The notes under the pieces: model-generated
What the model was told of the DNA's origin: nothing
Seen by the model: the letters and a program-made list of their open reading frames with translations, nothing else
Databases searched by the model: none
Made by a program: the position numbers and the translations under genes
Part shown: piece by piece, positions 330 through 54,571 of the stretch
Layout: each line of letters starts with the position of its first letter
How positions within the stretch are numbered: the first letter of the stretch is position 1
Source of the DNA: Octopus sinensis
Lineage: Eukaryota
Assembly (NCBI RefSeq): GCF_006345805.1
Contig: NC_043010.1
Span: 56,978,001 to 57,042,000, forward strand
Length of the DNA: 64,000 nt
Reading direction: 5' to 3'

Positions 330-785
330 CCATGGAAAGCGATAGTACTGTGTTACCATCACATGACACAATAGTAAAGGTAAACTTCTTGACTCATGCT
401 GACTCACAAATGTCAGTTTCCTGGTTTCCATGGTGTATGAATTCTCCAACTGGATGGGGGACACTGGTCCATTGCAGGATTTCTCATTTTTGCCAGCTGA
501 GTGGACTGGAGCAACGTGAAATGAAGTGTTCTGCTCAAGGACACAGTGCATCGCCCAGTCCACGAAACAACAAGCTTACAATCAGGAGTCCAACACCCTA
601 ACCACTAAGCCATGTGTCTCCACATGACACAGTAGTGTGTTACAATGAAATGAGACAGTACTAGGTTACCTTGACATGAAACACTGTGTTACTACAACAT
701 GGGACTGTACTGTGTTACATTGTCATGGTACAGTGATATGTTACAATGACATACGATAGTAGAATGTTAGTGTGACATGGGACAG
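330..785. repeat. Degenerate ~24-bp minisatellite (CATGAGACAGTACTGTGTTACAAT-like) interrupted by a SINE
   Basis: Recurrent GTACTGTGTTAC and GACATG units at 340-380 and 622-785. Confidence 0.55.
430..620 (-). mobile_element. tRNA-derived SINE fragment
   Basis: The reverse complement contains a tRNA-like head (GGCTTAGTGGTTAGGGTGTTGGACTC) and GTGTCCTTGAGCAGAACACTTCATTTCAC. A related copy lies at ~38700-38870. Confidence 0.65.
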
Positions 786-789
786 CAAC

Positions 790-1075
790 ATCATCACCAT
801 TTAACATCCATTTTCAATAGTGGCATGGGTTGGATGGCTTGAGAGGAACTGGCAAGGCCACATTCCACTGCCTGTTTTGGCTGGATGCCCCTCCTCATCC
901 TAGTCTCTCTACTGAGTGTACTGGGTGCTTTTCACATGGCCCCAGCCCACACACCAATACTTTTTATGTAGCACCTTGGTTTTAGGATCTCAATTTTGTT
1001 GTGGTGGGCAGGTCTAGTTGAGCACAGCAATCTCAGCCCTCTGTCATCTCCTCCAGTGTCATCTCATGGACAGTT
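790..1075 (-). mobile_element. Copy of abundant short retroposon / LINE 3'-end repeat with (GAT)n tail
   Basis: CATCATTTAACATCC...GCATGGGTTGGATGG...GGATGCCC motif shared with at least ten other copies in the window. Confidence 0.7.
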
Positions 1076-4000: not shown

Positions 4001-4205
4001 TGGATATCCAGCTTACACACATGTCTTCATTTCCTTAACTAACAATTCCTTGGATTCTATAACAGGTAAAGAATCCAAGAGGTGCAACATGTTTAAGAAC
4101 TGCTGAATAGCCACTACTTCAAAACAAAAACTAGATTCATCCGCTAGTAACTCAAGATAGCCATCACAAGCATGAGATTTGGGGAGAGAAAAACACATTA
4201 CAAGT

Positions 4206-4780
4206 GAAGGGATATGTGGTTTACCTGCCTTCCTACTTATGAGGACTTTGGTTTTAGCTAGGTTGACTCTAAGGCCCTTCGATTCTGATCCTTGTTTCCA
4301 CACTTGAAACTTCTCCTCTAGTTCTGATAGTGACTTAGCAATTAGAGCAAGGTTGTCAGCATAGAGGAGCTCCCAGGGGTATTCAGTCTTGAATTCCTCC
4401 ATTATTGCCTGGAGGACTATGATAAATGCTAGCATGGGTTGGACGATTTGACTGAGGACTGGGGAACCAGATGGCTGCACCAGGCTCCAATCCGATCAGT
4501 CCCCTTTTATTCATAATAGTCCTCCAGGTAATAACAGGGGAATTCAAGACAGGTTGCCCCTGGGAGCTCCTCTTTGCTGATGACCTGGCCCTCATAGCAG
4601 AATCACTACCAGAATTAGAAAAGAAATTTCGGGTGTGGAAGCTAGGTTTTCTACAGATTGAGCAGGGCCATCTACCTGAAGGGATATGTGGTTTGCCTGC
4701 CTTCCTACTTAATAGGACTTTGGTTTTAGCTAGGTTGACTCTAAGGCCCTTCGATTCTGATCCTTGTTTCCACACTTGAC
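4206..4780. mobile_element. Rearranged non-LTR retrotransposon reverse-transcriptase fragments on both strands
   Basis: PWELLYADNL on - (~4300-4435) and SPLLFIIVL...PWELLFADDL on + (~4498-4650). GLRVNLAKTKV occurs twice on -; GRWPCSICRK follows the right-hand copy. Confidence 0.85.
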
Positions 4781-13854: not shown

Positions 13855-13974
13855 GTAGTAGCACGGGTAACACTACCAGGTTATGTCAGGTGTGTGATGA
13901 CAATGCTTCAGGATTTCATTATGGTGTATGGTCTTGTGAAGGTTGTAAAGCTTTCTTTAAACGAAGTATTCAAG
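13855..13974 (+). CDS. ER: Estrogen receptor exon: first zinc finger of the DNA-binding domain (first visible coding exon)
   Basis: TTGTAG acceptor ends at 13854 and G|GTAAGT donor starts at 13975. Translation [41 protein letters not shown] contains the ER-type P-box CEGCKA. 120 nt, phase 1 at both ends. Confidence 0.97.
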
Positions 13975-16092: not shown

Positions 16093-16206
16093 GTCCAGTT
16101 GATTATGTGTGTCCTGCCACCAACAGCTGTACAATTGATAAACATCGACGTAAGAGTTGCCAAGCTTGTCGCTTACGCAAATGTTATGAAGTGGGCATGA
16201 ATAAAG
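16093..16206 (+). CDS. ER: Estrogen receptor exon: second zinc finger
   Basis: TTTAG acceptor and G|GTAAG donor. Translation [39 protein letters not shown]. 114 nt, phases match the neighbouring exons. Confidence 0.97.
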
Positions 16207-16989: not shown

Positions 16990-17690
16990 CGCAAGGGACA
17001 AATTCTGACAGCCACAGTCAAGGCGAGCCACTTGACAGGGGCAAAGCAGCTCCTGAACAATCTCCGGCATCCTGTTGAGCTTTTCTCAGATGAAAAGAAC
17101 TGCCAGGACCAGTTGCCCAACACCCAGAACAACAGATGGCTTGCTTACAATCCATGTGAGGCCCCATGTATCATGGAAACCAAGTTCCCCTAAACTGTGA
17201 TGGTCTTTGGATGTGTTTCCAGGGAGGATGACATCGTGCCACCCTACATCTTTGAACAGGGTTTTATGTTTAATTCAGACAGTTATGTGGAGCTACTGGA
17301 GAGGCTTTGCTGTTGGAAGGTTGTATGTGTGGCAGCAGGATTCGGTTCTTTGCCATACATCGGGAAAATATTAATACCCTGGATTACTATCTCTAGGGAG
17401 TGCTTGAGAAAGACACCGATTGCTCTACATGCAACCCCAAAGCCAAGCTGGTGGCGAAGATCAAGGAAGTGTTCAAAAATCTTCCCAGAGATACAGGAAC
17501 ACATTCAAAGATTTTCCCAGGGACACAGTGAAGAATGCATCAGGTGCTCAAGCCATCTTGAAGCTGTGGTGGAAGCTGAGGGTATCTTTTAGTAATCTAA
17601 TTGATTGTCTTTGATTTTTTTTTAAATACTTTTATTTTGGGAAGGGATCTTTTAAGCAAACTGTCAGATTTAGCCAAGACACCTTGTATA
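16990..17690 (+). mobile_element. Tc1/mariner-superfamily (maT/DD37D-like) transposon relic
   Basis: FSDEKN, MVFGCVSREDDIVPPYIFEQG and PLDY remnants; terminal CACCTTGTA. Same family as the copies at 58793 and 60860. Confidence 0.75.
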
Positions 17691-17921: not shown

Positions 17922-18034
17922 GTAGCCAAAGGAAGGAGAGAAAAAACAGTTCCAACCAAACTAAAGTAAAACGAAGCAGTGCCGACTTCTCAGATTCAAC
18001 AGTGAATTCAACCAGTGGAAACCAACCAGCAAAG
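17922..18034 (+). CDS. ER: Estrogen receptor exon: basic C-terminal extension/hinge
   Basis: TTTGCAG acceptor. Translation GSQRKERKNSSNQTKVKRSSADFSDSTVNSTSGNQPAK ends at a weak AAG|GTTTAC donor. 113 nt links phase 1 to the phase 0 start of the next exon. Confidence 0.85.
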
Positions 18035-18274
18035 GTTTACTTCTTAATCCTCGCTTTCTCTGTGCTGTTGTAGAGTGTGTGCATGTGATGTGCAGTGAGG
18101 AGCTGCTGTGTTGTTGGCTCACCATTCTATCGTACTTCAGTGAAATGTTATAATACCATCTATTTTAGTCCATGTGGTAGTGTTTATATTATTCAATGTA
18201 CAGCCATATAAGCAACAAATCCATATAACTGGTGGATGTATATAACCAAATAGAATTATTCAATGAACAGATCC

Positions 18275-19255
18275 AATGGTTTGCTGTCTGACGTCTCCAG
18301 TGCGAGCAGTGGCGTGCCTCAAAGTTCAGTGCTTGGGCCCTTATTATTTTTAGTCTTCATAAATGACTTGCCCGACGACCTCACGCAACACACCCCTCTA
18401 TTTGCCGATGATGTCAAACTGGTCGCTCCTCGTGGTGATATAGAGGATCTTCGTCAATGCCTCCACTAAGTTTGGAGATGGTCTAACGAATGGGACCTGT
18501 GTTTGAACGTGTCAAAGTGCTGTTATCTGCCTGTTGGCTCCTCTCCTGCAACTCAACTTGATTTCGAGCCGGGTTGTCTGCTGCTGGAGAGGACCGACCA
18601 GGTAAAGGACCTGGGTATCTTGGTGGATTCTTCCTTTTCGCCTTCGGCCCAGTGCGTCCATGCTGCCAACAAAGCACGTGGAGTTCTGATTTTGATTCGA
18701 CAGTTATTCGGAATGCTCACAGCAGCCATATTCCTACCGCTCCATGTCACGCTGGTGAGACCCATATTGGAGTACGGGATTCAAGCCTCTTCTCCTTATC
18801 ACCTCAAAGACATACATCATCTCGAAAGAGTCCAGAAGCTGGCTACCCGCATGGTTCTTGATCTCAAGCATTTGTCTTATGAAGAAAGGCTGAAGACGCT
18901 CGACCGTGGTGATCTCATTCTTGCTCACAACATCATAAGGGGAAAGTGTAACCTCTCGAAAGAGCTGTTCTTCACTCCTGCTCCAGAGCGTGGGCTGCAG
19001 GGTCACTCCGAAAAGCTCTTTCTGCGACGATTTCATCTCAATCGAAGGAGTGGGGCTTTCTCCGTCCGGGTTGCAGATCCGTGGAATAAGCTGCCGGACG
19101 AGATAGTAAAGATGCCGACGACCGCTCGGTTCAAAGTCTCTCTTGACCAGAAATGGCCTGAACTCTTTGTATGAACACCCTCCCTGTACATAACTCCATG
19201 TCCCCCTACATGGCCTTGCTTTTTGCTTTTTGAGCCAAAAAATTAACTTGACTTA
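18275..19255 (+). mobile_element. 5'-truncated CR1-type LINE (RT plus 3' region) in the ER hinge intron
   Basis: [40 protein letters not shown]...YEERL and RVADPWNKLP all lie in one frame, broken by a TAA at 18467. Confidence 0.92.
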
Positions 19256-19443
19256 TACAACCAATAAATCCATCTTTCCCTATAGATTCATATAACAATA
19301 AAACCCGCTGACCTTATACATCCATGTGACTCAAAGATCCTACCAAATAGATATAAGCAAGTTAACCTAAACCTTGTCCCTTAATTGCCATCACATACTG
19401 TGTTTAGTAAAATACTTTCAACTTTATCTTGTTTCTATTTCAG

Positions 19444-19624
19444 AGTCAGCGTTTATCAAAGTCTTCCTCTTTGGTTGAAGAACTCTCCAAGAATGATTTT
19501 GCCGTCCCTGAATGCAAGCTGAATCCCAGTATTCCTCTGACCAAAAATTATATTTTACAGCTTCTGATCCAGGTTGCAGATAAAGATTTAGTTCAGTTGA
19601 TAAACTGGGCCAAACACATACCTG
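19444..19624 (+). CDS. ER: Estrogen receptor exon: end of hinge and LBD helices 1-3
   Basis: Polypyrimidine tract plus TTTCAG acceptor, G|GTGAGT donor. Translation SQRLSKSSSLVEELSKNDF...ILQLLIQVADKDLVQLINWAKHIPG matches the ER helix 3 signature (human LADRELVHMINWAKRVPG). Confidence 0.95.
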
Positions 19625-21127
19625 GTGAGTTGATGTTTGGTTACATTCACCACAACAGACAGTGTCAGTGTTTGCCAACATAGGACATGGGATCCTTCAA
19701 TATTCCTTCTTCATCAGAATTGGCTGTGAAAGATCCAGTTATTTGGCTTGGAATTTTACTGAAGTCAAAACTTGTCTCAGTGTTTTTGCTGTGAGTTCAT
19801 TCCCGATTCAAGGAGAGTGAAAAAGATACTAAAGAAGGGCATCTTTTATCTTTTATTTGTTTCAGTCATTAGAGTGTGGCCATGCTGGGGCACTGCTTTG
19901 AAGAATTTCTAGATGAAGGAATCAAGCCCAGAACTTACATTTTTTGTAAGCTTTGTAATTATTGTATTGGATGCTTTTGCTAAACTGCTAAGTTACAGGG
20001 ACAAACACAGACAAAAAAAACATACACACACACTACTATAGCCTGAGGCTATAGTAGAAGATACGTGCCATAGGTTCCACATAGTGGGAACTGAAGCCAG
20101 ATGGTTGAGAGACAAACTTCACACAGCCACAGACGAGCCTACGCAGCTAGACATGATAAAATGAACAGGAATATATGCTGAGTTACTATAGAAATGTGTT
20201 GGTACTTTAGCCATGTTGTTACTACCTATGAAATTAGCACTGGAATAATTTTGTGTCATCCAGAAGACTGTAATTGGGTCCTGTTTCTTTCATTTTGAAT
20301 ATTGCCATTGCATTCTCTTTCTAGAATAAATTAGCCACATGGTTTTGTTTATTGTATTTTTATTGACTCAGCCAAATTCTTCAAACATGGATTTGTTACT
20401 CCACAATCTGAAGCTGGCATCCAATTATTTTAAAAAGGTAAAATTTATAGATATTTTACAAAGAGTTATGTAAAAGTATCCCCAAATTTGAAGAAGACAA
20501 CATTCACATTTAAGCACCCGTGTGGTACAAGAGAAATCTGGTGCTTTCTCTAAATGGATTTACTGCTACATTACAGCTGTATTTTAGGGTATATATATGA
20601 GAGATTTTAGGCGAGTTGCTAACGAGAGGTTTAATACATGACAATTGCAAAGCTGCTCTGTGCAGACAATAGTATTGCCTGTAGGCTGTGTGGCTTTGCC
20701 ATTGCAGAATTGATTCAGTGCACATCAAAATGGTATCCACTTGTGTTCATTTCACAAAATTCAATTATTTTGACCACTAAAGATTTCTGTCAGGGCAGAC
20801 CAAAATACATTGGTCATGTTGACAAAGAGTATGGAGTGAACTTATACAGCCTTAAAGCCATTTTTATAGAATGCTTGGACTCTCTACTTCCAGGCAGTAG
20901 CTTTGAATATATAAAATCTTTTGACCCAAAGCATCAAATCTTCCTTTCAGTGGTTAGGCAAAATTGAAAGAAATGATGATCATAGCTGACCCCCCCCCCC
21001 CTAATTTACCTCTTTACAAGACTCAGTGACAACCAAAGATGTGCTGATAGATTTTACTTCTTTTGTTAAAATTTCATAACTAGAAATGACATGAAATGGA
21101 TGTTATGCATGATTAATCAGTATTATC

Positions 21128-21166
<39 letters not shown>

Positions 21167-21291
21167 TATATCTTGCTTTATATAACTAAGATCTCTACCT
21201 TTATAAACCTCTAATAATCATTAGTATAACAAAATTATTTTCCCTACTTTGACTAACTTTAGTTTTTTTTTTTTTGTTTCTCTTTCAATAG

Positions 21292-21433
21292 GTTATGCTG
21301 ATTTATCTTTGTCTGACCAAGTACATCTTATAGAATGCTGTTGGATGGAGTTAGTGTTACTTAACTGTGCATATCGTTCCATGGAATATGAGGGGAAACG
21401 GCTTGCCTTTGCCTCAAATCTAATCTTAGAAAA
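21292..21433 (+). CDS. ER: Estrogen receptor exon: LBD helices 4-5 and beta-turn (3' boundary non-canonical)
   Basis: T-rich tract plus AATAG acceptor. Translation GYADLSLSDQVHLIECCWMELVLLNCAYRSMEYEGKRLAFASNLILE(K). The next exon starts in phase 2, which forces the boundary after GAA AA at 21433, where the intron reads TTAAGTAT rather than GTAAGTAT. Confidence 0.9.
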
Positions 21434-22274
21434 TTAAGTATCTTATTTGTTCTTTAAAATGTTTCCAGTTTTAAAATTGAGTCTAGCATTCAGATGACTT
21501 TGTTGGATGTAATGTTTATTTATTCACATTGTTTAGAATTAATCTTGTGTTCTCTTTTAATTCAACATTTGGTGATGTGATTGTTTACTTTTAGAATGAC
21601 ATTGTAGGACAGGTGTGAGAGGCTGGATCTGGTCATTTTAAACCAGATTCAGAAACATTTTGGGCCCCGATATGGTCAGCTCAAATGCTTAATGGGTAAA
21701 TTTAGCATTCCCTATTTGATGGCATATCTACCATTGCATGTTAGATTGTCTGGGATACACCTTACTGACTTTCTTCTTCTCACTGAAGTAGATATCTAAC
21801 TTTAAGAGAGAGAGAGAGAGAGGGAGATGATGTGGTTCGAGGTAATGAACCATTGGATTCAAGTTCAAACAGCTTACTTTGCATGAGTCATCCTCCTTTA
21901 TATTGTCACCTACTGGCTTGTGATGTCTGTTTAGGGTTAGTGGTGAGGTGTTTGTTTGTGTGTGTGTGTGTGATGTTTATTGTGGGTTGACAGTGAAAGG
22001 TAAAGTGAGAATGTAATGTTTGATCCAGATATATCGCATATTTGTGAAATCTATGAACAACTGGAAGAGAAATTCAGCCCCCTTTTCATCCTGTGAACAA
22101 TGACAACAAAATGCAGCACAGTATTGAATTCTATATTGGTTATGGCCACCACTGTATGATAGGTTGATAAAGATGGAATTGGACTTGAGGGGGGGAGTTT
22201 ACTATTCAAAAGTTTCCTACGTTTGTCTGAGTTGTCTATTTTCATTGTGATGATTATTTCCATTCTTGTTTCAG

Positions 22275-22405
22275 GCACCACTGGGAGATTCTAGGAATGA
22301 CCCAGATCTTGGAACAAGTAGCAGCTGTCAGTGAGCAACTCTTACAGTTTGGTATTAATCGAGAAGAATTGTTATTACTTGAAGCTACTATCTTAGTAAA
22401 TGCAG
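22275..22405 (+). CDS. ER: Estrogen receptor exon: LBD helices 7-8
   Basis: TTTCAG acceptor and G|GTATGT donor. Translation (K)HHWEILGMTQILEQVAAVSEQLLQFGINREELLLLEATILVNA. 131 nt. Confidence 0.93.
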
Positions 22406-22629
22406 GTATGTTGGTGACTTTACATGATTACTAACTCAGAACCAACCCATTCTATTACATTATTAATGTAATTTATCTGACATACATGTGGCCTGCTCTG
22501 TCTGACGGCTGTCCTACATTACAGACATATTGTACAACACCTCAAACCTACCATAAAAATGCCCATCACACATAATGTTAGATATACTGTATGACACTTC
22601 AGAAATACTGTTCACACATCACTCATGTG

Positions 22630-22930
22630 TCATATAGTATGTCTAATGTATGTCCTACACTATGCCTGATGTGTTGTACAGTGCCTTTGATATGTGTCCT
22701 ACAGTATGTCTGATGTGCTTGTGCAGTCTGTCTGGTGTGTGTTGTACAGTATGTCTGACAAGTAGAGTGCTTGATGTATGGACACATGTCACACATAGGG
22801 CAAGAGTTACAGAAGACATACTCTACAGTACATGTCAGACAGTATGACTGACGTGTTCTATCATATGTCTTCGATTTTCTACAGCATGCTCTATGTTGTA
22901 TAGTATGTCCGATGTGTATTGTACATTAAA
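22630..22930. repeat. Degenerate ~22-bp minisatellite in the last ER intron
   Basis: Repeated TATGTCTGATGTGTTGTACAG-like units. Confidence 0.55.
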
Positions 22931-22987
22931 TTCCTGTTCAGTAATTCTTTTATTTTTTAATGAGAAATTGTTTTCTTTCTTCTGCAG

Positions 22988-23283
22988 AGGTGCGACGATT
23001 GGCTGGTTTTAGTAAAATTGATGACATCCGGCAAATCATTTTAAATGCATTGATTGACACTGCCCAGAAGTATCACCCAGATAACCCGCGGCATGTTCCG
23101 TCCGCCCTACTGCTGCTCAGTCATGTACGTCAAGCCTCTGATCGTAGCATCATTTACCTACAGAAACAGAAAGACGAAGGTCATGTGACATTTTGCGAAC
23201 TGATAACTGAGATGCTAGAAGCACAGAACAGTTCTAACGATATTGTAGCACCGAGAGCGGATGTGATTGGGATGGGCACCTGA
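22988..23283 (+). CDS. ER: Estrogen receptor terminal coding exon: LBD helices 9-12 (AF-2) and short F domain
   Basis: TCTGCAG acceptor. Translation EVRRLAGFSKIDDIRQIILNALID...LLLLSHVRQASDRSIIYLQKQKDEGHVTFCELITEMLEAQ...GMGT, with TGA at 23281-23283. AF-2 core ELITEMLEA corresponds to human DLLLEMLDA. Confidence 0.96.
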
Positions 23284-23346
23284 GGAGGAGGAGGAGTGTT
23301 GCTACTAAACAATCTAGGAATGTGTGTTTGTGTGTGTGTGTGTTTA

Positions 23347-23412
<66 letters not shown>

Positions 23413-26062: not shown

Positions 26063-26869
26063 ATATATATATTGTGTATGTATATATATATATATATGTG
26101 TGTGTGTGTATGTATAAGAATATACATATATATGTATATATACACAGCTTGGAAGCTGAAACAGTGTTAGGAACTAAAGGAAATATGTATGTATGTATGT
26201 AAATATATACATGTGTGTGTATGTGTATATATATATATATATATATACCGATATACATATGTATATATGTATGTAAATATATATATATATGTGTGTATAT
26301 ATATGTGTATATGTATGTAAATATGTATATATATGTGTGTGTGTATTATATATATATATATATATATATATTTGCATCATACAGCAGCTTTAGGTTGCTG
26401 AGTTTATATAAAATAAATGTGAATAGAAACTCAGCAACTGAGAAACTGGTGTGCAGTGAAGGAACAAATGGTGTGATCTGCTTTGAAGGCCTCTTCTCCC
26501 ATCTCTTCGTCTTACTTTATTCTTATATTATTCTTGTACTAACACATATTTCTACATGAGTATCCAGTCCTAGAATATACGATACTGCAGCTTATCACGT
26601 AATAGTGAAATAGCTCTTAAATACATTAGAAGATATCATCCAAATTACTATGTATATATGTGTGTGTATGTTCGTCTCAGCATTGATAAGCATGAAACAG
26701 CATGCACTCACATATTCCCAGAGGGTCATATACTACTCAAACGCAACTGCCCTATTTTTCCCCATCCATGCCAGTCCTGATCAGCATGCAGTGTTAGGAA
26801 GCGGCTTTTATCTAACATCTTGTGTAATACCCGGTGCGAAACCATTCATATGATGGGGAGTAGTAAATA

Positions 26870-27586
26870 TATATATATGTGGATATATACGTATATACAT
26901 ACACACACACATATATATATGTACGTATATACGTACATATATATATATACACGTATATTTATATATACACATATATATATATATACATACACACACAAAT
27001 ATATATATTAGATATACGTACATATATATATATACACGTATATATATATAAATTATATATATATATATACATATATATTTATATGATACATATTATATAT
27101 ATATAGAATATTATATATATATACAACAATTATTTATATATACCACTATATATTTATATATACACTATATATTAATATACATATATATATTATATATACA
27201 TATATATTTATATATACATATATATTTTTATATATACATATATATTTATTATATACATATAGATTATATATACATATAGATTTATTATACATATATATTA
27301 TATATTACATATATATATATACACATTATATATAGATAATATATATATATATACATATACATATATACATATCACATATATACATACATATATACATACA
27401 TATATATAACATATATATACATATATATATATACACATATATATATATATACACATATACATATATATACACATATACATTATATATACACATATAATAT
27501 ATATACACATATACATATATACACATATACATATATACATATAACATTATATATACATATACATATATATACATATATATATATAC

Positions 27587-27617
<31 letters not shown>

Positions 27618-27662
27618 CATATCTAATATATATACATATATATATATATACATTATATATAC

Positions 27663-27709
<47 letters not shown>

Positions 27710-28720
27710 ATATATATAATACATAACTGTATATAAACATATATTATTATACATACATATATATATTACATACAGATATATATATACCTATATATATATA
27801 TTATCATATATTATATATACATATACATATATATATATATACATAATATATATATATATTACATTATATATAATATATTATACATATATATATATATATA
27901 GATATATATATACATATATATATACTACATAATATTATATATATATATATTATATACATATATATATATATACATATATATAATATATATACATATATAT
28001 ATAGTATAATATATATATACATTAATATACGATATTATATACATATATATACATATATATATTATATATACATATATTTATATATAACATATAATATATA
28101 TTATACACGTATATTTCATATATCATACATTATATTATACATACGTATATTTATATATAACATATATATATCATACGTATATTATATATACATATATTTC
28201 TATATACGTATATTTATATATACATATATTTATATATACGTATATATATATACATATATTATTATATACATATATAATATACATATATTTTATATAAACC
28301 ATATATATATATACATATATTTATATATACATATATATATATATAATATTTATATACTACACTATATATTTATTATCTACATATATATATATACATTATA
28401 TATCTACATATTTTATATATACATTATATATAATATATTTATATATACATATTATATATACTATATTATATATACATTATTATACATATATTTATATATA
28501 CATACATATATTATATAACATATATATATATACATATATTTTATATAATATTTAATTTACTTTATTACATATATATATACATATATTTTATATATATATT
28601 TATATTACATATATATATACATATATTTATAGATATATTATATTACATATATATATACATATTATAATATATACATATATAATAATATCATATATATATA
28701 TACATCTATATATATTACAT

Positions 28721-28754
<34 letters not shown>

Positions 28755-28843
28755 CATATAATATATATTACATATATATATATAATACATATATATAGAT
28801 ATTATACATATATTATATATATATACATAGATATAATATATAC

Positions 28844-28906
<63 letters not shown>

Positions 28907-30580
28907 TATATATATACATATATATTTTATATATACATATATTTATATATACATATACATATATATATACGTATATTTATACATACCATATGATATATAT
29001 ACATATATTTATATATACATATATTTATATATACATATATTATATTACATATTATACATATATTTATATATACATATATTTATATATACATATATATATA
29101 TACATATATATACATATATTTATATATACATATATATATATACATATTTATATTTACATATATATATACATATGTTATATAAATTTATATTTACATATAT
29201 ATATACATAATTATATATATATTTATATTACATAATATATTACATATATATATATATATACATTATTTATATATATATTTATATTACATATATATATACA
29301 TAATATACATATATTTATATATTTATATACATATATATACATATATTATATATATATTTTATATACATATATATATACAATATATACATATAATATACAT
29401 ATATATATATATATACATATATTTATAGATATATATATTATACATATATTTATTATACATATATATACATATATATATATATACATATATATATACATAT
29501 ATATCTACATATCTATATATAAATATATATATATACAGATATATATATACATATATATATATATACATATATATATACATATATATATATACATACATAT
29601 ATATATACATATATATTATATACATACAATATAACATACATATATATATACATATATATATATATACATATATATTATACATATATATATATACATATAT
29701 AACATATATATACATATATATATACATACATATATATATACATTAGATATACATATATATATATACATAATATACATCTAATATACATACATATATATAT
29801 ACATATATATATACATATATTATATATAACAATATATATACATATATATATAAAATAATATATATATACATATATATACATTATATATATACATATATAT
29901 ATATACATAATATATATACATATATATATACATACATATATACACATATATATATACATATATATATACATAATATATACATATATATATACATATATAT
30001 ATATACATATATAATATAATATATATATACATATATATATACATATATATATACATCATATATAATATACATATATATATACATATATATATACATATAT
30101 ATATATACATATATATATACATACATATATACATCACTATATATAACATATATATATACATATATATATATATACATATATATATACATATATATATACA
30201 TATATATATACATATAATATACATACATATATACATACATATATACATACATATATACATACATATATATATACATATATATATACATATATATATACAT
30301 ATATATATATACATATATACATATATATATACATATATATACATTATATATATATATATACACATATATATATACATATATATACACATTATATATACAC
30401 ATATATATACACATATATATATATACATATATATACATATATTTATATATACAATATATATATATACATATATTTATATATATATATATATTACATATAT
30501 ATATACACATATTATATATACATATATTATATTACCTATATATATATACATATATATATATATATACATATATTATATTA

Positions 30581-30612
<32 letters not shown>

Positions 30613-30753
30613 CCATATATATTTATATATACATATATATATATATTATATATACATATATTTATATACATTAAATATATATATTATATATACATATATT
30701 TTATATATACATATATTATATACATATATTTATATATACATATATATATATAC

Positions 30754-30784
<31 letters not shown>

Positions 30785-30921
30785 ACATATAGTATATTAA
30801 TACATATATATTATATTACATATTATATATATATACATATATATATACACATATATATACATACAATAATATAATACATATATATATATACATATATATA
30901 TATACATATATATATATATAC

Positions 30922-30969
<48 letters not shown>

Positions 30970-31048
30970 ATATTTATATTACATATATATATTTATATAT
31001 ACATATATATATGTATATATATATACATATATTATATATACATATATT

Positions 31049-31144
<96 letters not shown>

Positions 31145-31219
31145 ACATATATATATATAAATCTATATAAATATATATGTGGATATGCATGTATGTGTAT
31201 ATATAATTATATGTGGATA

Positions 31220-31255
<36 letters not shown>

Positions 31256-32966
31256 GTATCCATATATAAATATATGTGGATATGTATGTGTGTGTGTATA
31301 TATACACATATACACATACATATGGATATTATATATACATATATATATATATATATATAGTGTACATTTCAACACATAGGAATCCCCTCTTGCATTCAAC
31401 ACATTACAAAGGACAGCTAGGTTTTATAACCTAATTTTTACATGTTAGGCCACTAGAGGTGAAAATTTAATCAATTTTCCATTTCCCTTTGATATGTTTA
31501 AGTATATATATATATTTCTAAAGGGTGTCACTGTGAATTCGTCCTTGCATTGGAGTTGGTTTCCAAAAGATTTCTAAACGTGTTTCTTCCTCCTTGACTG
31601 ATGTCAATTAGTGCAGAGATGAAAAGTTCAATAATTGTATCAGGAATTATGATTGAAGTGAGGAAATAAACTCTCAGCAAACCCAGTCGTATGTTTTGTG
31701 AATGGAGGGGAATTAAATGTGATTATACATGAGATTTTATTTCTATTCAGGAGCTGTACGATTGTTTTGATGCAGAAAGACAATAAATTCCTTTTTTTAG
31801 AATCCGAGTGTCCAAAAGAACGTTAGAAGTACATAGGTATGGTGTTCATAATGTGTAATTGTTCTCATGGATGTATGTGTGTGTGTATATGTATGCGTGT
31901 GTATGTGTGAACACACACATATATATGTGTGTGTGTGCCTGTGTATGTGTATATATATACATATAGATATATACATATATATACATACATATATATATAT
32001 ACATATATATACATACATATATACATACATATAGTTACATATATATAGATATATACATATATATATAGATATATACATATATATATAGATATATACATAT
32101 ATATAAGATATATAATATATATATATATATACATACATATATATATATACATACATTATATATATACATACATATATATATATATACATACATATATATA
32201 GATATATACATACATATATTTATATACATATATATATAGATATATACATATATATATATATATATACATACATATATATATATACATACATATATATATA
32301 TACATACATATATATATATACATACATATATATAGATATATACATACATATATATATATATCATCATCATCATATACATATATATATATATACATATACA
32401 TACATATATATATATACATACATATATATATATACATACATATACATATATATATATATATACATATATACATATACATATATATACATATATATATATA
32501 CATATATACATATATATATCTATATAATACATATATATATATATACATATATATACATATATATATATATACATATACATATATATACATATACATAAAT
32601 ATACATATATATACATATACATATATTACTACATATACATATACATATATATTATATATACATACATATATATATACAATATATACATAATATATATGCA
32701 TACATATATATAATATAATATATATAAACATACATAGATAATATATACATACATATATATATACATATATATACATATATTATATGCATAAAGCTATATA
32801 CTATACATACATATATATATACATACATATATATATACATATATATACATATATATATATGCATACATATATATACATATACATACATATATGCATACAT
32901 ATACTAGATATATACATATATATATACATACATATAGATATATACATATATGTATGCATACATATA

Positions 32967-33007
<41 letters not shown>

Positions 33008-33420
33008 TATATACATATATATCCATGCATATATATAGACATATGCACATACATATCCATGCATATATATAGACATATACACACATATATACATACATAT
33101 AGATATATACATATATTATATATATATACATACATATAGATTTATACATATAATATATATAAACATATTATATACATACATATATATATTACACACATAT
33201 ATATATACATACATATATACACACACACCACAACATATATATATGTATATAACACATATATATATATAATATGTATGCTCTATATATATATGTACACATA
33301 CATACAATATATATATATATACATACATACACATATATATACATACAATATATATATATAGATAAATATATATATTACCTACATATATATATAATAGATA
33401 GATAGATACATCATATATGT
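26870..33420. repeat. Very long (TA)n/(TACA)n compound microsatellite, with a ~500-bp unique interruption at ~31360-31870
   Basis: Directly visible; almost strictly alternating purine-pyrimidine. Confidence 0.97.
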
Positions 33421-33424
33421 ATTA

Positions 33425-33618
33425 CAGTGCAGGTGGCACGTAAAAAAGCACCACTACACTCGCGGAGTGGTTGGCGTTAGGAAGGGCATCCAGCTGTAGA
33501 AACATTGCCAGAGAAGACCGGAGCCTGGTGCAGCCTTCTGGCTTCTCAGATTCCCGGTCGAACCGTCCAACCCATGCTAGCATGGAGAACGGACGTTAAA
33601 CGATGATGATGACGATGA
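33425..33618 (+). mobile_element. (GAT)n-tailed retroposon 3'-end repeat
   Basis: GGCGTTAGGAAGGGCATCCAGCTGTAGAAAC...CCAACCCATGCTAGCATGG...GTTAAACGATGATGATG. Confidence 0.75.
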
Positions 33619-33711
33619 TATATATATACATAAATATATATATATATATATACATCTATATATATATACATACATATATATATATATATATACATACATA
33701 CATATATATAT

Positions 33712-33742
<31 letters not shown>

Positions 33743-33761
33743 CATACATACATATATATAT

Positions 33762-33792
<31 letters not shown>

Positions 33793-33839
33793 CATACATA
33801 CATATATATATATATATACATACATACATTATTATTATT

Positions 33840-35050
33840 ATTATGGCTGCCCCCTCGCTATCGAGTATGGCCATTGCACGAAGCTTAACTGTTACTGGTG
33901 CTATGATCAAATGTGACCTTTTAGCCCAGCCAAAGATCTACAATGTACAGAATTGGCAACTAAAACACAAGAGCTTCTATACTTTCACACCAAGAGCCTT
34001 CCAATATTTCAAGATCACTGATGCGGTCCTTCCACTTAATGCCGTAGATCCGTCTCAGACACATCAGATGGGAACGTTCCAGTTGTTTAAGGCAGTATCG
34101 ATATGTGACCCACGTCTCGCAGGCATAGAGAAGAGAAGGGAGCACACATGCCTTGTACACCTTTATCTTTGTCTTTCTGCATATGTCTCGCCGACTCCAG
34201 AGGCGCTTTTCTAGCCTTCCGAAAGCAAACATTGCTTTCTTAATTCTATAAGGAATTTCAATCATCAAATTGCTATCTATTAATAGTGCTTCCAGGTATA
34301 CAAACTGATCAACTGCATCAAGCCGTTTACCATTCACATAGATATTTGGTACACTATACTGCTTACCAGGGGCAGGTTGATGCATGACAACAGTTTTCTT
34401 GAGATTGACTGTCAATCCTAAGGCAGTGCAAGCATCAGAGAATGCATTCAAAATGTGTTGCATATCAATCTGTGTGTGTGCTACTAGATCACAATCATCT
34501 GCATACAAAAGGTCTCTTATGATAGAGGTAAATATCTTTGTTTTTGCAGCAAGGCGCCTGATATTAAATATGCTGCCAGAGGTTCGATAATGGACGTAAA
34601 CACCGTATCTGCAGTCTCTGAATGCAATACAGAACATCATCGCAAAATATATGGAAAATAGGGTCGGTGCCAGAATATCCCCCTGTTTCACTCCATTTTA
34701 TATTGAAATGGGTTCTGATATTTTCTCTCTAACATTCACCCTACCATTCATGTCTTCATGAAAAGACTTAACCAAAGCAAGGAACTTTTCAGGACACCCA
34801 AGTTTCTGGAGGACTTTCCACAATGCTTTTCTATTGACGGTATCAAAGGCTTTTGTCAGATCGACAAAAACCTGATACAATCCACCTGTTCCACACACTT
34901 CTCCTGAAGCTGTTCTAGCTGAAAAGATCATATCAGCAGTGCCACGTCTCACACGAAAGCCAGATTGACTTTCTGAAGAACACATCTGCAATGTATTTCG
35001 CAGACGATCCAGAAGTATCCTGCATAAAACCTTTTTCCTACGACAGACAG
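33840..35050 (-). mobile_element. RTE-clade LINE, 5'-truncated, with RT domain and 3' end
   Basis: QSGFRVRRGTADMIFS, VFVDLTKAFDTVNR, KQGDILAPTLFSIYF, LLYADDCDL and [11 protein letters not shown]. Frameshifted; (AAT)n tail at ~33830-33842. Confidence 0.92.
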
Positions 35051-35264: not shown

Positions 35265-36020
35265 AACCATCCCGATCGTGTCCGTTCGCCAGCACATCTG
35301 GCACCTGTGTCGGTGGCACATAAAGACACCATCCGAAGACCCGGCGACGTAGACAGTCCACCTGTGCATACCTTCCTTCTTGTGACACTTGTGAAGACCT
35401 GTTGAGGCAAGTGACACTTGTGAAGACCTGTTGAGGCAAGTGAAAATCAAATCAAATCAAAACAAATCAAAATAGATGAGCATAAATGGAAATTTGTATC
35501 TTGTGGTACCAGTGCCGTGGCACCCAAGAAAATCATCCGAACGTGGCCGTAGCCAGTACCGCATAGACTGGCCTCCGGCTTTGGGGACGTAACAAACACC
35601 ATCCGATCGTGGCCGTCCGCCAGCCTCATCTGGCACCTGTGTCGGTGGCACATAAAACCCATCCGAGCGTGGCCGTCTGCCAGCCTCGTCTGGCCACCCT
35701 GCCAGCCTCATCGGCACCTGTGTCGTGGCACATAAAAACACCATCCGAGCGTGGCCGTCTGCCAGCCTCGTCTGGCCCTGTTCGGTGGCACATAAAAACA
35801 CCATCCGAGCGTGGCCGTTCGCCAGCCTCGTCTGGCACCTGTGTCGGTGCAACATAAATCACCCATACACTCTCGAGTGTTGGCGTTAGGAGGGCATCCC
35901 GCTGTAGAAACACTGCAGATCTGACTGGCTGGTGCAGCCTTCGGGCTCCCCAGACCCCAGTTGAACCGTCCAACCCATGCTAGCATGGAAAACGGACGCT
36001 AACTGATATGATGATTGATG
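35265..36020 (+). mobile_element. Retroposon repeat with an internal array of ~60-bp subunits and (GAT)n tail
   Basis: About six CACCATCCGAGCGTGGCCGTCTGCCAGCCTCGTCTGGCACCTGTGTCGGTGGCACATAA-like units, followed by the common tail. Confidence 0.75.
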
Positions 36021-36070: not shown

Positions 36071-36639
36071 CATATACATACATGTACACATACATACATG
36101 TACACATACATATATATATATATATATACACATACATATATATATATATATATACACATACATATATATATATATATACGCATGTCTATATGTGAAATCA
36201 CTGCCAGAGCAGCTGTCTGGTTTCTGTGCTAGTGGTACATAAAAAAGTACCATTTGAGCGTGATTGTTACCAGCGTCGCCTTACTGGCACTTGTGCTGGT
36301 GGCACATGAACAAAACATTTGAGCGAGGTCATTGCCAGTGCTGCTGGACTGACTCCTGTGCAGGTGGCACGTAAAAAACACCATATCAAGCGTGGGCGTT
36401 GCCAGTCTTACCAAACTGGCACATAAATGCACCCACCACACTCTCGGAGTGGTTGGCCCGATTAAGGGCATCCAGCTGTAGAAACTCTGCCAGATCAGAT
36501 TGGAGCCTGGCGAAGCCATCTGGTTCATCAATCCTCAGTAAAATCGTCCAACTCATGCCAGCATGGAAATCAGACATTAAATGATGATGATGATAGATAC
36601 ATATATAGATATACTTGTATACACATGTATACATATATA

Positions 36640-36672
<33 letters not shown>

Positions 36673-36911
36673 AATATATATATACACACATGTGTACATA
36701 CATATATATATATATACACAGTAGACATACATATATATATATATATATATACATGTATACATACATATATATATATTACCACATGTATACATACATATAT
36801 ATATATATACATGTATACATACATATATATTATATATACATGTATACATACTATATACATGTATCATACATATATACATGTGTATACATACATATATATA
36901 TACACACATGT

Positions 36912-36957
<46 letters not shown>

Positions 36958-36991
36958 GTATACATACATATATATACACGTATACATATAT

Positions 36992-37036
<45 letters not shown>

Positions 37037-37270
37037 TATACACACATGTATACATACATATATATATATTATATACACATGTATACATACATATATATAC
37101 ACGTATACATATATACACACACACACATTATATATATATATATATACACACATATATATATACACACACACACATATATATATATATACACACACATATA
37201 TATATACACACATATATATATACACACACATATATATATACACACATATGTATATACATATACACATATG
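36020..37270. repeat. (TA)n/(CA)n compound microsatellite with an embedded retroposon copy (36180-36595)
   Basis: Directly visible. Confidence 0.9.
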
Positions 37271-37649: not shown

Positions 37650-38206
37650 GGTGGCTGCCCCTTCGTTATCGAGTATGGCCATTGCACGAAGCTTAATCAA
37701 TGTTGTTATCATGCAATGCCTGTGCAAGAAGAATTTTTTTTAAAGTGAGGAAAGGCCGTGCACTGAGTCAATCCCACTCACTAAGCAACAGCAGCCATAA
37801 TCCGAAAAGAAGAACAAGTCAACATCATCGGTAACCACTGAGCCGCAGGTTTTATGTCGGAGTTATCCCAGTTACCTGAGTTACCTTCTCCTAGAAGGAT
37901 GCCCTAACAGAGGTTAGGAGTCCTTCACTCCCAATGGTTTAACCGTGCGATCGGGTATTCAGTCCGATTATTTCTATGTCCCCGTGCATGATACAGCCTT
38001 AAGACGTATATTGGATAGCTGTTGACTCTTAAGAGTTCTTCCGCCCTTTGATGGGTTTTGCTTTTCCTCCCGCAGGGTGTCCAATAAACACCCTCCTCAC
38101 CAAGCAAGCTTGGTGGGGTTGCTGGTTTAGTTGCCGACGACCCGACCATGCAACAGGTTGTACGGGGCTACATGTTACCAGTAGCACTCGAAAATGACCT
38201 GACACA
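37650..38206 (-). mobile_element. Probable RTE deletion derivative (3' terminus joined to GC-rich, 5'-UTR-like sequence)
   Basis: TGGCTGCCCC..CG.TATCGAGTATGGCCATTGCACGAAGCTTA at 37650 matches the RTE 3' end at 33845. The remainder is non-coding and GC-richer; its 5'-UTR identity is inferred. Confidence 0.5.
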
Positions 38207-39330
38207 TATATATATATATATATATATAATACATACATACAGACAGACATATACATACATACATATATACACATACATATACAGACATATATACACATAT
38301 ATATATATACATATACACATATATGTACATACATATACACATATGTACATATATATATATATATATACACATATATGTACACACACACATATATATATAT
38401 ATATACATATACACATACATATATATACATACATATATACATATACATATATAAATATATACACATATATATACCTATATATACATATATATACCTATAT
38501 ATACATGTATACACATATATATATATACATATATATATATGTATAACAATATATGAGATGAGTAGCACTGTCAGTTGCTATGAGGGTCCCAGGGTCCCAG
38601 CTGACAAGGATCAACAGAACAGCTTGCTTGTGAAATGAACATTCATGTAGCTGTGTACTCCACACACATGTGTACCTTAATGTAATTCTGAGGGAGATTC
38701 AGCCATCACACAGAGTATGAGAAGGGTGGCCCTTTGAATTACTGGTACCACTCATTTTTGCCAGCTGAATGGAGTGGAGCAATGTGAAATAAAGTGTCTT
38801 GCTCAAGGATACAACATGTCAGTGGGAATTGAACTTATGACCTTGTGAGTTTGAGCTAAATACCCTAAGTAGTCGACTAATCACTATAGATTGAGAGAGG
38901 GAGAGAGATATTGCGAAGATATATGTATCTGCATGAAAGTTGATGATGTAACTTGATGTAGATTGTGAAACAGCTGTAAGCATAACAGAAATTTTGTTTC
39001 AGTCATTTCACTGTGGCTGTGTTGGGACTTGCCCGTCACATATTTGTGTGTGTTGTTGTGTTTGGTAGTTTCTATAATCTCATTATATATATGTGAAAAA
39101 AGGAAAAGATTAACTTCACTGGTAGTTCTAATTAGTTTAATTTATTTTTTAATTTGCATATAATATAAATTTTACATTTTAGTTCGTAGATATACAAGCT
39201 AAACTATAAAATTTATATTATTAAAAGATTAAAAAGCAAATAATTAAACCAATCAGAACTACCAGTGAAGTCATTCCTTTTCGCTTTTCAAATATACCGA
39301 ACTGTACCAAGGACCTCACACATTTTCCAG

Positions 39331-47129: not shown

Positions 47130-47746
47130 AAGCAGTGTGTGTGTATGTATGTATATATATATATATATACACACACATATATATCACATATATATGCACA
47201 TATATATATATACACACACATATATATATACATATATATGCACATATATATACAGATATTTATATATATATATACACATATATATACATATATTTATATA
47301 TATATATACACATATATATACATATATTTATATATATATATACACATATATATACATATATTTATATATATATATACACATATATATACATATATTTATA
47401 TATATATATACACCATATATATACATATATTTATATATATATATACACATATATATACATATATTTATATATATATATACACATATAATACATATATTTA
47501 TATAAATATACACATATATATACATATATTTATATATATATATAACACATATATATACATATATTATATATATATATATATACACATATATATACATATA
47601 TTTATATATATATATATATTATATATATATATATACACATATATATACATATATTTATATATATATATATACACATATATATACATATATTTATATATAT
47701 ATATATAATATATATATATACATATATTTATATATATATATATATC

Positions 47747-47778
<32 letters not shown>

Positions 47779-47779
47779 T

Positions 47780-47827
<48 letters not shown>

Positions 47828-48401
47828 TATATAATATATATATATATAATATATATATAGCACATATATATATATACATATATACATATATATGCACATA
47901 TATATATGCACATATAATATACACACTTATATATGCACATATATACACACATATATATATGCACATATATATATACACACATATATATATGCACATATAT
48001 ATATGCACACCTATGTATATGCACACATATATATATGCACATATATGTATATACACATATATATATACACATATATATACACATATATATACACATATAT
48101 ATACACATATATATATATGCACATATATATACACATATATATACATATATATGCACATATATATACATATATATGCACATATAAATATGCATATACATTA
48201 TATGCATATACAATATATGCATATACATATATATATACATATACATTATCTATACATATACATATATATACATATACATAATATATATATAATTATAATA
48301 TATACATATATATATATATGCATATACATATTATATATACATATATATATATATATACATATATATATACATATATATATATACATCTATATTATATAAC
48401 A

Positions 48402-48435
<34 letters not shown>

Positions 48436-49417
48436 GCACATATATATACATACATATATATATACATACATATATATATATACATACATAATATATATAT
48501 ACATACATATATATATACAGCAATATATAATATATATGCATATACATATATATATATGAACATATATATACATACATATATATATATACATACATATATA
48601 TAAATACATATATATATATACATACATATATATAAATACATATATATATATATACATACATGTATATATATGCACATATATATATATATATGCACATATA
48701 TTATATATATATATATGCACATATATATATACATATATATATACATATATATATGCACATACATATATATATGCACATATATATTATACATATACACATA
48801 TACATATATACACACATATATATACACATATACATATATACACACATATATATACATATATATATATATATATACATATATACATACACATACATACATA
48901 CATACACACATATATACACACACATATATACATACACATATATATATACATACACATATATATATACATACACATATATATACATACACATATATATACA
49001 TACACATATATATACATACACATATATATACATACACATATATATATATATACACATATATATACATACACATATATATATACACATATATATACACATA
49101 TATATACATACACATATATACATATATATATATACATACATACACATATACATATATATACACATATACATATATATACACATATACATATATATACACA
49201 TATACATATATATACACATATACATATATATACACATATACATATATATATACATATACAATATATATACACATATACATACATATACATATATATACAC
49301 ATACATATATATACACATACATATATATACACATATACATATACACATATACATATACACATATACATATATATATACATATACATATATATATACATAC
49401 ATACATACATACATACA

Positions 49418-49453
<36 letters not shown>

Positions 49454-50312
49454 CACATATATACACATATATACATATATATACATATATATACACATAT
49501 ACATATATATACACATATACATATATATACACATATATATACACATATATATATACATATATATATACATATACATATATATATACTTATACATATATAT
49601 ATACTTATACATATATATATACATATACATATACATATATATATATACATATATATATACATATACATATATATATATACATATATATATATACATATAC
49701 ATATATATATACATATACATATATATATATACATATACATATATATATATACATATATATATATATACATACATACATATATACATATATACATATATAC
49801 ATATATATATACACATATAAATATATATATACATATATATATACATACACATATATATATACATACACATATATATATATACATAAATATATATATATAC
49901 ATACATATATATTATATATTATTACATACATATATATATATATACATACATATATATTATATATTATTACATACATATATATATATATATACATACATAT
50001 ATATATATACATACATATATATATATACATACATATATATTATACATATATATACATATATACATATACATTATACATATATACATATACATTATACATA
50101 TACACATATACATTATACATATACATTATACACATAATACATATACATATATACACATATATACATATATACACATATATACATATATACACATATACAC
50201 ATATATACACATATATACATATATATACATATATACATATATATACATATATACACATATATACATATATACACATATATACATATATACACAATAATAT
50301 ACATATATATAC

Positions 50313-50343
<31 letters not shown>

Positions 50344-50394
50344 CATATATATAATATATACATAATATATATTATATACATATAATATATATAC

Positions 50395-50425
<31 letters not shown>

Positions 50426-50968
50426 CATATATATATATATTATATATATATTATATATACATAGATTATATCATATATATATATATATACATATATATAA
50501 TATACATATATATATATACATATAATTACATATACATATATATACATATATATATATATACATATATATACATATACATTAATACATATACATATAGATA
50601 CATATACATATAGATATAGATACATATTACATATAGATACATATACATACATATACATATAGATACATATACATACATATACATATAGATACATATACAT
50701 ATATATACATATACATATATATACATATATATATATACATATATATACATATACATATAGATACATATACATATAGATACATATACATACATATACATAT
50801 AGATACATATACATATAGATACATATACATATATATACATTACATACATATAATACATATACATATATATACATATACATATATATACATATACATATAT
50901 ATACATATATATATATATATACATTATTATACACATATAATATATATACACAATATATATATACACAC

Positions 50969-50999
<31 letters not shown>

Positions 51000-51001
51000 C
51001 A

Positions 51002-51048
<47 letters not shown>

Positions 51049-51997
51049 CATATATATACATATATATACATTTTATATATATATACATATAATATACATA
51101 TATATATATAGACATATATACATAATATATATATACATATATATATATACATATATATATATGTACATATAATATAACATATACCTATATATATACATAT
51201 ACCTATATATACATATACCTATATATATACATATACCTATATATATACATATACCTATATATATATACATATACCTATTATATATACATATATATATATA
51301 CATATATATATATACATATATATATATGTACATATATATATACACATATACCTATATATATACATAACCTATATATATACATATACCTATATATAGACAT
51401 ATACCTATATATATACATATACCTATATATATATACATATACTTATTATATATACACATAGATATATATATATATATATATAACCTATATATATATACAT
51501 ATATATATACATTATATATACCTATATATATACATATATATACCTATATTAATACCTATATATTACATAATATATATAACTATATATATATACATATATA
51601 TATAACATATATATATACATATATATATACATAATATATAACATATATATATACACATATATATATACACATATATATATAACATATATATATATACACA
51701 TATATATATATACACATATATATATATACAATATATATATACACATATATATATATACACATATATATATATACACATATATATATATACACATATATAT
51801 TACACATATATACACATATATTATATACACTATATATATATAATATATATAACACACATATATTTATATATATACAATATATATATACACAATATATATA
51901 TACACATTTAATATAACATATATATATATACACATATATATATATACACATATATATATATACACATATATATATATACATATATATATAACATATA

Positions 51998-52031
<34 letters not shown>

Positions 52032-52446
52032 ATACATATATGTATAACACATATAGTATATACACATATATGTATATACACATATATGTATATACACATA
52101 TATGTATATACATATATACAATATACATATATGTATATACACATATATGTATATACATATATACATATATATACATATATACATATATATACATATATAC
52201 ATATATATACATATATACATATATATACATACATATACATATATACATATATATACATATATATACACATATATACATATATATACACATATATACACAT
52301 ATATACATATATATACACATATATACATATATATACACATATATATATATACATACATACATATATATACACATATATATATATACATACATACATATAT
52401 ATACACATATATATATATACATACATATATATACACATATATATAT

Positions 52447-52477
<31 letters not shown>

Positions 52478-52504
52478 CATACATATATATACACATATAT
52501 ATAT

Positions 52505-52537
<33 letters not shown>

Positions 52538-52659
52538 CATATATACATACATATATATATATACATATATACATACATATATATATATACATATATACAT
52601 ACATATATATATATACATACATATATATATATACATACATACATATATATATACATACA

Positions 52660-52709
<50 letters not shown>

Positions 52710-52792
52710 CATACATATATATATATACATATATACATACATATATATATATACATATATACATACATATATATATATACATATATACATAC

Positions 52793-52823
<31 letters not shown>

Positions 52824-54571
52824 CATATATACATACATATATATATATATATATACATATATACATACATATATATATATATACATATATACATACATAT
52901 ATATATATACATATATACATACATATATATATATACATATATACATACATATATATATATACATATATACATACATATATATATATACATACATATATAT
53001 ATATACATACATATATATATATACATATATACATACATATATATATATACATACATATATATATATACATACATATATATATATACATATATACATACAT
53101 ATATATATATACATACATATATATATATACATATATACATCATATATATATACACATACATATATATATACATACATATATAATCTACATATATACATCA
53201 TATATATATATACATACATATATATATATACATATATACATACATATATATATATACATACATATATATATACATATATACATACATATATATATATACA
53301 TACATATATATATATACATATATACATACATATATATATATACATATATACATACATATATATATACATATATACATACATATATATATATACATATATA
53401 CATACATATATATACATATATACATACATATATATATATACATATATACATACATATATATATACATATATACATACATATATACATACATACATATACA
53501 TATACATACATATATATATACATATATATACACATATATATATATATACATATATATACACATATATATATACATATATATACACATATATATATACATA
53601 TATATACACATATATATATATACATATATATACACATATATATATATATACATATATATACACATATATATATATATACATATATATACACATATATATA
53701 TACATATATATACACATATATTATATAATATAATACAATTATATATATATTACATATATATACACATATATATATATATACATATATATACACATATATA
53801 TATATATACATATATATACACATATATATATATACATATATATACACATATATATATATATACATATATATACACATATATATATATACATATATATACA
53901 CATATATATACACATATATATATATATACATATATATACACATATATATATATATATACACATATATATACACATATATATACACATATATATACACATA
54001 TATATACACATATATATACACATATATATACACATATATATACACATATATATACACATATATATACACATATATATACACATATATATACATATATATA
54101 CACATATATATACACATATATATACATATATACACATATATATACATATATATACACATATATATACATATACACATATATATACACATATATATACATA
54201 TATATACACATATATATATATACATACACATATATATATACATATACACATATATATATATACATAAATATACACATATATATATATATATATAAACATA
54301 TATATATATATATATACACATATATATATATAACACAATATATAGATATATATAACACATATATATATATATACACATATATAATATATATATATATATA
54401 CAACATATATATATATATATATACATATATATACACATATAATACATACACATAATATACATACACATATAACACATATATATATACACATATATATATA
54501 TACACACATATATATATATACACATATATACACATATATATATGTGCATGTGCATACACACAACACACATA

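Follow-up and report, generated by a model that had tools for sequence, protein, structure and literature searches.

The window, by which we mean the whole 64,000-nt stretch of Octopus sinensis DNA that was analysed, carries a single octopus estrogen receptor (ER) gene of the NR3A type (mollusc ER) on the + strand, as judged from the homology of its predicted protein. Seven exons, all on the + strand, were placed by tblastn with a human ESR1 probe and by inspection of the boundaries. DBD exon 1 (13855-13974, donor TTCAAG/gtaagt) encodes the first zinc finger with the P-box CEGCKA and DBD exon 2 (16093-16206, donor ATAAAG/gtaaga) the second zinc finger; both were found by tblastn and their boundaries read. 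The hinge exon (GSQRKERKNSSNQTKVKR...) lies at 17922-18034 (donor GCAAAG/gtttac), a block with an open frame that is conserved with contig L001 from a second octopod, described below. LBD exon 1 (...LINWAKHIPG) at 19444-19624, with the donor TACCTG/gtgagt, was defined by tblastn, boundary reading and comparison with L001. LBD exon 2 (21292-21433, 142 nt) is preceded by ctctttcaatAG, encodes (G)YADLSLSDQVHLIECCWMELVLLNCAYRSMEYEGKRLAFASNLILE(K) and has the 3' end ...CTA ATC TTA GAA AA, followed by a TT donor; it was placed by tblastn and the L001 comparison. LBD exon 3, with (K)HHWEILGMTQILEQVAAVSEQLLQFGINREELLLLEATILVNA, extends over 22275-22405 (donor ATGCAG/gtatgt, L001 comparison), and LBD exon 4, the last coding exon (EVRRLAGFSK...GMGT), over 22988-23283, ending in a TGA stop at 23281-23283.

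When the seven exons are joined, a single 364-aa open frame runs from the first zinc finger through to the stop; this exon set starts at DBD exon 1 and does not include an upstream A/B-domain exon. Identity to human ESR1 is 69% and 83% for the two C4 zinc-finger exons, which carry the ER-type P-box. The joined LBD aligns gap-free over residues 5-232 with the oyster ER structure 4N1Y (E = 3e-85), with which it is complete and colinear including helix 12, and all 60 PDB matches listed for it are estrogen receptors, each with E <= 1e-32. Its C-terminal 71 residues are 100% identical in tblastn to the O. bimaculoides UniRef entry A0A0L8G4A8, which puts the source of the window very close to that species, if not within it. 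Set beside the mollusc ERs (4N1Y and O. vulgaris Q19AB0/ABG00286), the octopus gene is an ER orthologue with an ER-type DBD. A tblastn search across the window found no second or mutually exclusive copy of LBD exon 2.

Several other elements share the window with the ER gene. Long ORFs with reverse-transcriptase-like motifs (e.g. LLYADDCDLVAH), plus one possibly transposase-like ORF, are present at 4013-4780 (-), 18503-19174 (+), 33960-34691 (-) and 17197-17592 (+); from their sequence these look like retroelement or transposon remnants upstream of, within introns of, and downstream of the ER gene. Two large degenerate (TA)n / TACA-type microsatellite arrays at 26867-33422 (6.5 kb) and 47144-54543 (7.4 kb) have a GC content of 9-20% and a strong C-over-G skew, and smaller microsatellite arrays lie at 33618-33826, 36593-37262 and 38206-38554. 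A short GC-rich tandem repeat of 60-82-nt units (CTGCCAGCCTCGTCTGGCACCTGTGTCGGTGGCACATAAAA...), possibly within a SINE-like element, occupies 35619-35858. We also noticed an antisense ORF of 85-99 aa across LBD exon 1, in the window at 19424-19681 (-) and in L001 at 732-1031 (-) (Logan gene call P0024), which most likely arises as a side effect of sense-strand constraint.

The intron between LBD exons 2 and 3 starts in an unusual way. The other five donors of the ER gene are all GT (gtaagt, gtaaga, gtttac, gtgagt, gtatgt) and all six acceptors are AG. At 21434-21441 (+) the sequence reads TTAAGTAT, which differs from the consensus donor GTAAGTAT by a T at +1. A canonical U2-type intron (GT-AG or GC-AG) would start with G, followed by T or C; both the window (21434-21435) and the second octopod (L001-L003) have TT instead. 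Directly behind the cut an in-frame TAA at 21435-21437 (+) would end the protein upon intron retention, the unspliced reading being GAA AAT TAA. The nearest downstream GT, at 21438-21439, is located behind this TAA, which stays within the exon if that GT is used. If the exon were skipped, the reading frame would be lost, since 142 mod 3 = 1, and translation would run into a stop (GGC ACC ACT GGG AGA TTC TAG). The downstream exon begins with base 22275 (G CAC CAC TGG), after ttcttgtttcAG, and the joined peptide ...NLILEK/HHWEILGM... aligns gap-free to 4N1Y, and to human ERalpha at LLLDR/NQG. The initial annotation had described these features, namely a TT start with a stop right behind it, a phase-2 E-K-H-H-W junction (...GAA AA / G CAC CAC TGG) matching the human exon 5/6 junction, retention of the stop by GT 21438 and a frame shift upon skipping of the 142-nt exon, and all of them were borne out by direct reading and alignment.

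Around the deviant dinucleotide the intron, at 21434-22274 (+) and 841 nt long, has the context of U2-like non-canonical introns, with AAGT at +3 to +6, a pyrimidine tract and a 3' AG. The U at +1 is followed at +2 to +8 by the U1-complementary consensus; AAA/TTAAGTAT matches this consensus at seven of seven positions, all consecutive, and on the intron side no other donor of the ER gene matches the U1 consensus as well as the TT donor (7/8). The polypyrimidine tract and canonical AG acceptor (atgattatttccattcttgtttcag) at 22250-22274 (+) end in ...cttgtttcAG, 16 of the 20 bases before the AG being pyrimidines; they are kept in L001, and the acceptor position is the same in cuttlefish contigs L004-L011. 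U12 motifs are absent from the 841-nt intron: it has neither the 5' splice site /RTATCCTT where the cut would fall nor the TCCTTAAC branch site expected 10-30 nt before the 3' end.

An exon-3 ORF from a related animal (P0007) led to the Logan contigs L001-L003 (runs SRR11869391, SRR11869384 and SRR11869385), which are 100% identical to each other, so that one individual may underlie all three. Against window 18001-23353 they show about 77-88% identity with many intronic indels, the introns being ~77% identical, indicating that they come from another octopod species. The contigs cross the donor without a break, in several runs, and read AGAAAA/TTAAGTATCTTAT, the same as the window, within an identical 19-nt donor context. 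All five exon boundaries from the hinge to the stop are ungapped and conserved between the window and L001. The T at 21434 is therefore real and common to two species, and must be older than the split of the two lineages; in both species compared at the donor, the TT dinucleotide is conserved between constrained exons.

Strong purifying selection acts, in the ER frame, on all coding exons to either side of the donor. From the hinge to the stop, the window and L001 differ at 26 positions, 23 synonymous and 3 non-synonymous (pS 0.122, pN 0.004, pN/pS about 0.03, binomial p = 9e-13). All three differences in LBD exon 2 and all five in LBD exon 3 are synonymous. In the two exons that follow the would-be stop, 16 differences are synonymous and 3 non-synonymous (p = 2e-8, pN/pS = 0.055), with no indels and no stops between the window and L001 past the in-frame TAA; neither a dN/dS near 1 nor further downstream lesions, the marks of a pseudogene or null allele, were found. 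Within LBD exon 3, two synonymous changes are located 5' of its first Met, in the ER frame, which fits a ribosome entering from LBD exon 2. In a more distant third cephalopod, whose contigs L016-L020 cover LBD exons 1 and 4 only, the last exon (L016) has diverged by 17% in its nucleotides but shows just 5 changes among 98 aa, and LBD exon 3 of the cuttlefish Acanthosepion esculentum has 1 change in 43 aa at 15% nucleotide divergence (cuttlefish run ERR12945500 is named in bioRxiv 10.1101/2025.04.22.649952). On L016, at 283-972, the 229-aa Logan call P0023 takes TGA for Trp and thereby passes the true ER stop; under the standard code the ORF ends ...GMGT followed by the stop, the same as in the other species.

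Other molluscs point to the ancestral state of the site. ER-like mollusc contigs from metagenome assemblies have the same phase-2 intron with the donors GACAA/gtaggt (L012/L013) and GACAG/gtatac (L015), which makes G at +1 the ancestral state and T a change that arose on the line to these octopods. The cuttlefish contigs L004-L011, which hold LBD exon 3 and its acceptor and end short of the donor, have the matching acceptor ttttcag/ACACCATTGG. A further ER-like genomic ORF, the 81-aa protein P0002 from an ENA metagenome assembly, is lophotrochozoan and has the LBD exon 2 acceptor; it reads through the exon 2/exon 3 junction (...APDFHLERGQWGTTGMGEVLEQV), and the intron studied here seems absent or shifted there.

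Word-indexed protein searches and an exhaustive HMMER search found no spliced cephalopod ER and returned only genomic exon ORFs and the fragment A0A0L8G4A8 (= P0008). This O. bimaculoides model is a 110-aa fragment corresponding to window 22297-22417 and 23068-23283. Its N-terminus is the first Met within LBD exon 3; it overruns that exon by 3 intronic codons (GML; donor GTGACT, not GTATGT) and omits the first ~20 conserved residues of the last exon (EVRRLAGFSKIDDIRQIILNALIDTAQ), and it looks like an annotation artefact.

We put at about 0.7 the probability that 21434-22274 is a genuine, fixed and conserved U2-type TT-AG intron that arose from a GT-AG ancestor when G at +1 changed to T. The initial annotation had listed such a rare non-canonical intron as one option, which comparison now favours, and had regarded a base-call error or a private variant as the most likely explanation. 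If the true base at 21434 were G, a single G to T step would be the simplest route from a perfect GTAAGTAT donor to the observed site, and exact look-ups of two window ORFs returned no independent record from the same species. However, examination of the orthologous donor in another cephalopod, a check that the annotation itself had proposed, gave the same T in L001-L003; these are independent short-read assemblies from a different octopod species, ~23% diverged in its introns, with an otherwise identical donor context, and the chance of an error or a private variant is now very slight. The annotation had also allowed for a splice-null allele truncating the LBD, so that the receptor would end ...NLILEN at the stop and lose the second half of the LBD. 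A +1 G to T change is a classic null lesion, here with TAA directly after it, and loss of the LBD might be tolerated, since mollusc ERs do not bind ligand (PMC3886901). Against this pseudogenising mutation stand the excess of synonymous changes past the stop in two lineages that both carry the T (16 versus 3), the freedom of those exons from indels and stops, the nearly unchanged last-exon protein of the third cephalopod and a joined LBD that is complete up to helix 12, and we consider it very unlikely.

If the T is real, a productive mRNA could still arise through a canonical site nearby. All frame-preserving junctions near LBD exons 2 and 3 were listed, with GT, GC, AT or TT as donor and AG or AC as acceptor, and only 21433/22275 gives the full-length product; none of the cryptic canonical donors and acceptors in this exhaustive listing preserves the full-length LBD. 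The best canonical alternative, GGA/GTTAGTGT at 21349/21350, could be joined in frame to the acceptor at 22275, and another GT (21438) sits 4 nt 3' of the TT, where it could act together with recoding; in Burset's model, as it is cited in PMC4176328, non-canonical sites rely on a nearby canonical site. Use of GT 21350, however, would shorten the LBD by 28 conserved core residues, and the 84 nt that would become intronic encode the most conserved part of the LBD, gap-free against oyster and human ER, and differ between the species at 1 position, synonymous, versus ~23% in introns. GT 21438 was rejected: it retains the TAA and adds 4 nt, so that the frame at the AG acceptor stays off even with the stop edited away. 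Splicing through either GT is the least improbable of these rivals, though still quite unlikely. Separate expression of the downstream exons from an internal start (MTQILEQ...), with the upstream part ending at the TAA, has in its favour that A0A0L8G4A8 starts at that Met, but this model uses a wrong donor and lacks 20 conserved last-exon residues, as expected of an artefact, and the two changes upstream of the Met are synonymous only, in the ER frame. We know of no fold or function for half an LBD, which also counts against an internal start, and we give it only a slim chance. Least probable of all is a U12-type intron or a site restored by A-to-I editing. The sequence GTATCTTAT at 21438 loosely resembles the U12 5' splice site RTATCCTTT, coleoids edit their RNA heavily, and human AT-AG sites edited to GT-AG exist (PMC4176328). 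Yet GTATCTTAT is 4 nt out of register and downstream of the stop, and a branch motif like TCCTTAAC occurs nowhere in the intron, hence the U12 type was rejected. Editing was rejected as well, given that the deviant base at +1 is U, not A, and thus not an ADAR substrate, and that the 200 nt around the donor fold no better than shuffled sequence (z = +1.33), leaving no stable local duplex.

The position of the cut is set by the entire 5' splice-site region, not by GU alone, and the G at +1 matters chiefly for catalysis. A tolerated U at +1 would accordingly be expected in an unusually strong context. Under the favoured reading of a functional TT-AG intron, the U2-type spliceosome would cut at 21433/21434 and 22274/22275 to give ...GAA AA/G CAC CAC... 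(E-K-H-H-W), with a predicted mRNA junction of ...TTAGAAAA joined to GCACCACTGG. Full complementarity of +2 to +8 (UAAGUAU) to the U1 5' end may offset the missing G, the AGU at +4 to +6 used by U6 is retained, and U5, with its U-rich loop, could pair with the A-rich end of the exon (AAA). The strong pyrimidine tract with its AG acceptor would be a third compensating feature.

A change of G to T at +1 normally abolishes splicing, as IVS+1G>T disease alleles and mutagenesis have demonstrated. Those null alleles involve the same base change at the same position of a consensus donor; whereas they are removed by selection, the octopus T is shared between species and the coding sequence downstream of it is under strong constraint. 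To our knowledge, few types of splice site are rarer than a constitutive donor that naturally carries U at +1. The closest known case is human ETV1, which has a constitutive, GENCODE-annotated TT-AG junction, and canonical-only aligners break its transcript (Parada et al. 2014, NAR, PMC4176328). Both are protein-coding genes with TT...AG ends in a U2-like context, spliced constitutively in ETV1 and by prediction in octopus, with no canonical alternative nearby, and in both canonical-only tools break transcript assembly. The ETV1 junction is backed by RNA-seq and GENCODE, whereas the octopus junction is deduced from conservation and reading frame; gene and phylum differ, and the origin would be independent. 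The conserved GA-AG 5' splice sites of FGFR1-3 (Twigg 1998, Brackenridge 2003, both as cited in PMC4176328) are likewise non-canonical and conserved and, according to that account, are used efficiently by the major spliceosome via strong flanking signals; there the deviation is at +2 (GA) and in alternative splicing, in contrast to +1 in octopus. The intron position itself is common to other molluscs and to human exon 5/6, while the donor is GT in ER-like mollusc contigs and TT in the octopus lineage. An O. vulgaris ER cDNA (Q19AB0/ABG00286) was cloned and is described as a constitutive activator (Keay et al. 2006, as cited in PMC2529310), which, if as reported, indicates that an intact ER mRNA is made in the genus. 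As the TT-AG class is already known, and very rare, the octopus ER would probably add a case to it, not a new principle.

A further-reaching version holds that the TT donor is ancient across coleoid cephalopods and that its usage is regulated rather than just tolerated; we regard this as unlikely. One form of it is A-to-I editing at 21433, the A at -1, which would create the consensus G at -1, strengthen U1 pairing and turn the split codon from AAG (Lys) into AGG (Arg). Oyster and human ER have Arg at this position, but the local fold (z = +1.33) gives editing there no support. If it were true, ER output would depend on RNA editing.

For annotation, pipelines that drop non-canonical junctions will break the ER gene or call it a pseudogene; STAR with RemoveNoncanonical was used in a recent cuttlefish genome paper. 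A start at the first Met of LBD exon 3 is the output expected of a canonical-only pipeline, and the TT donor probably explains the fragmented, mis-spliced A0A0L8G4A8. This pitfall bears on cephalopod endocrinology and on the evolution of steroid receptors. In addition, a conserved +1 U donor in so well understood a gene would lend itself to a clean study of how the major spliceosome copes without G at +1.
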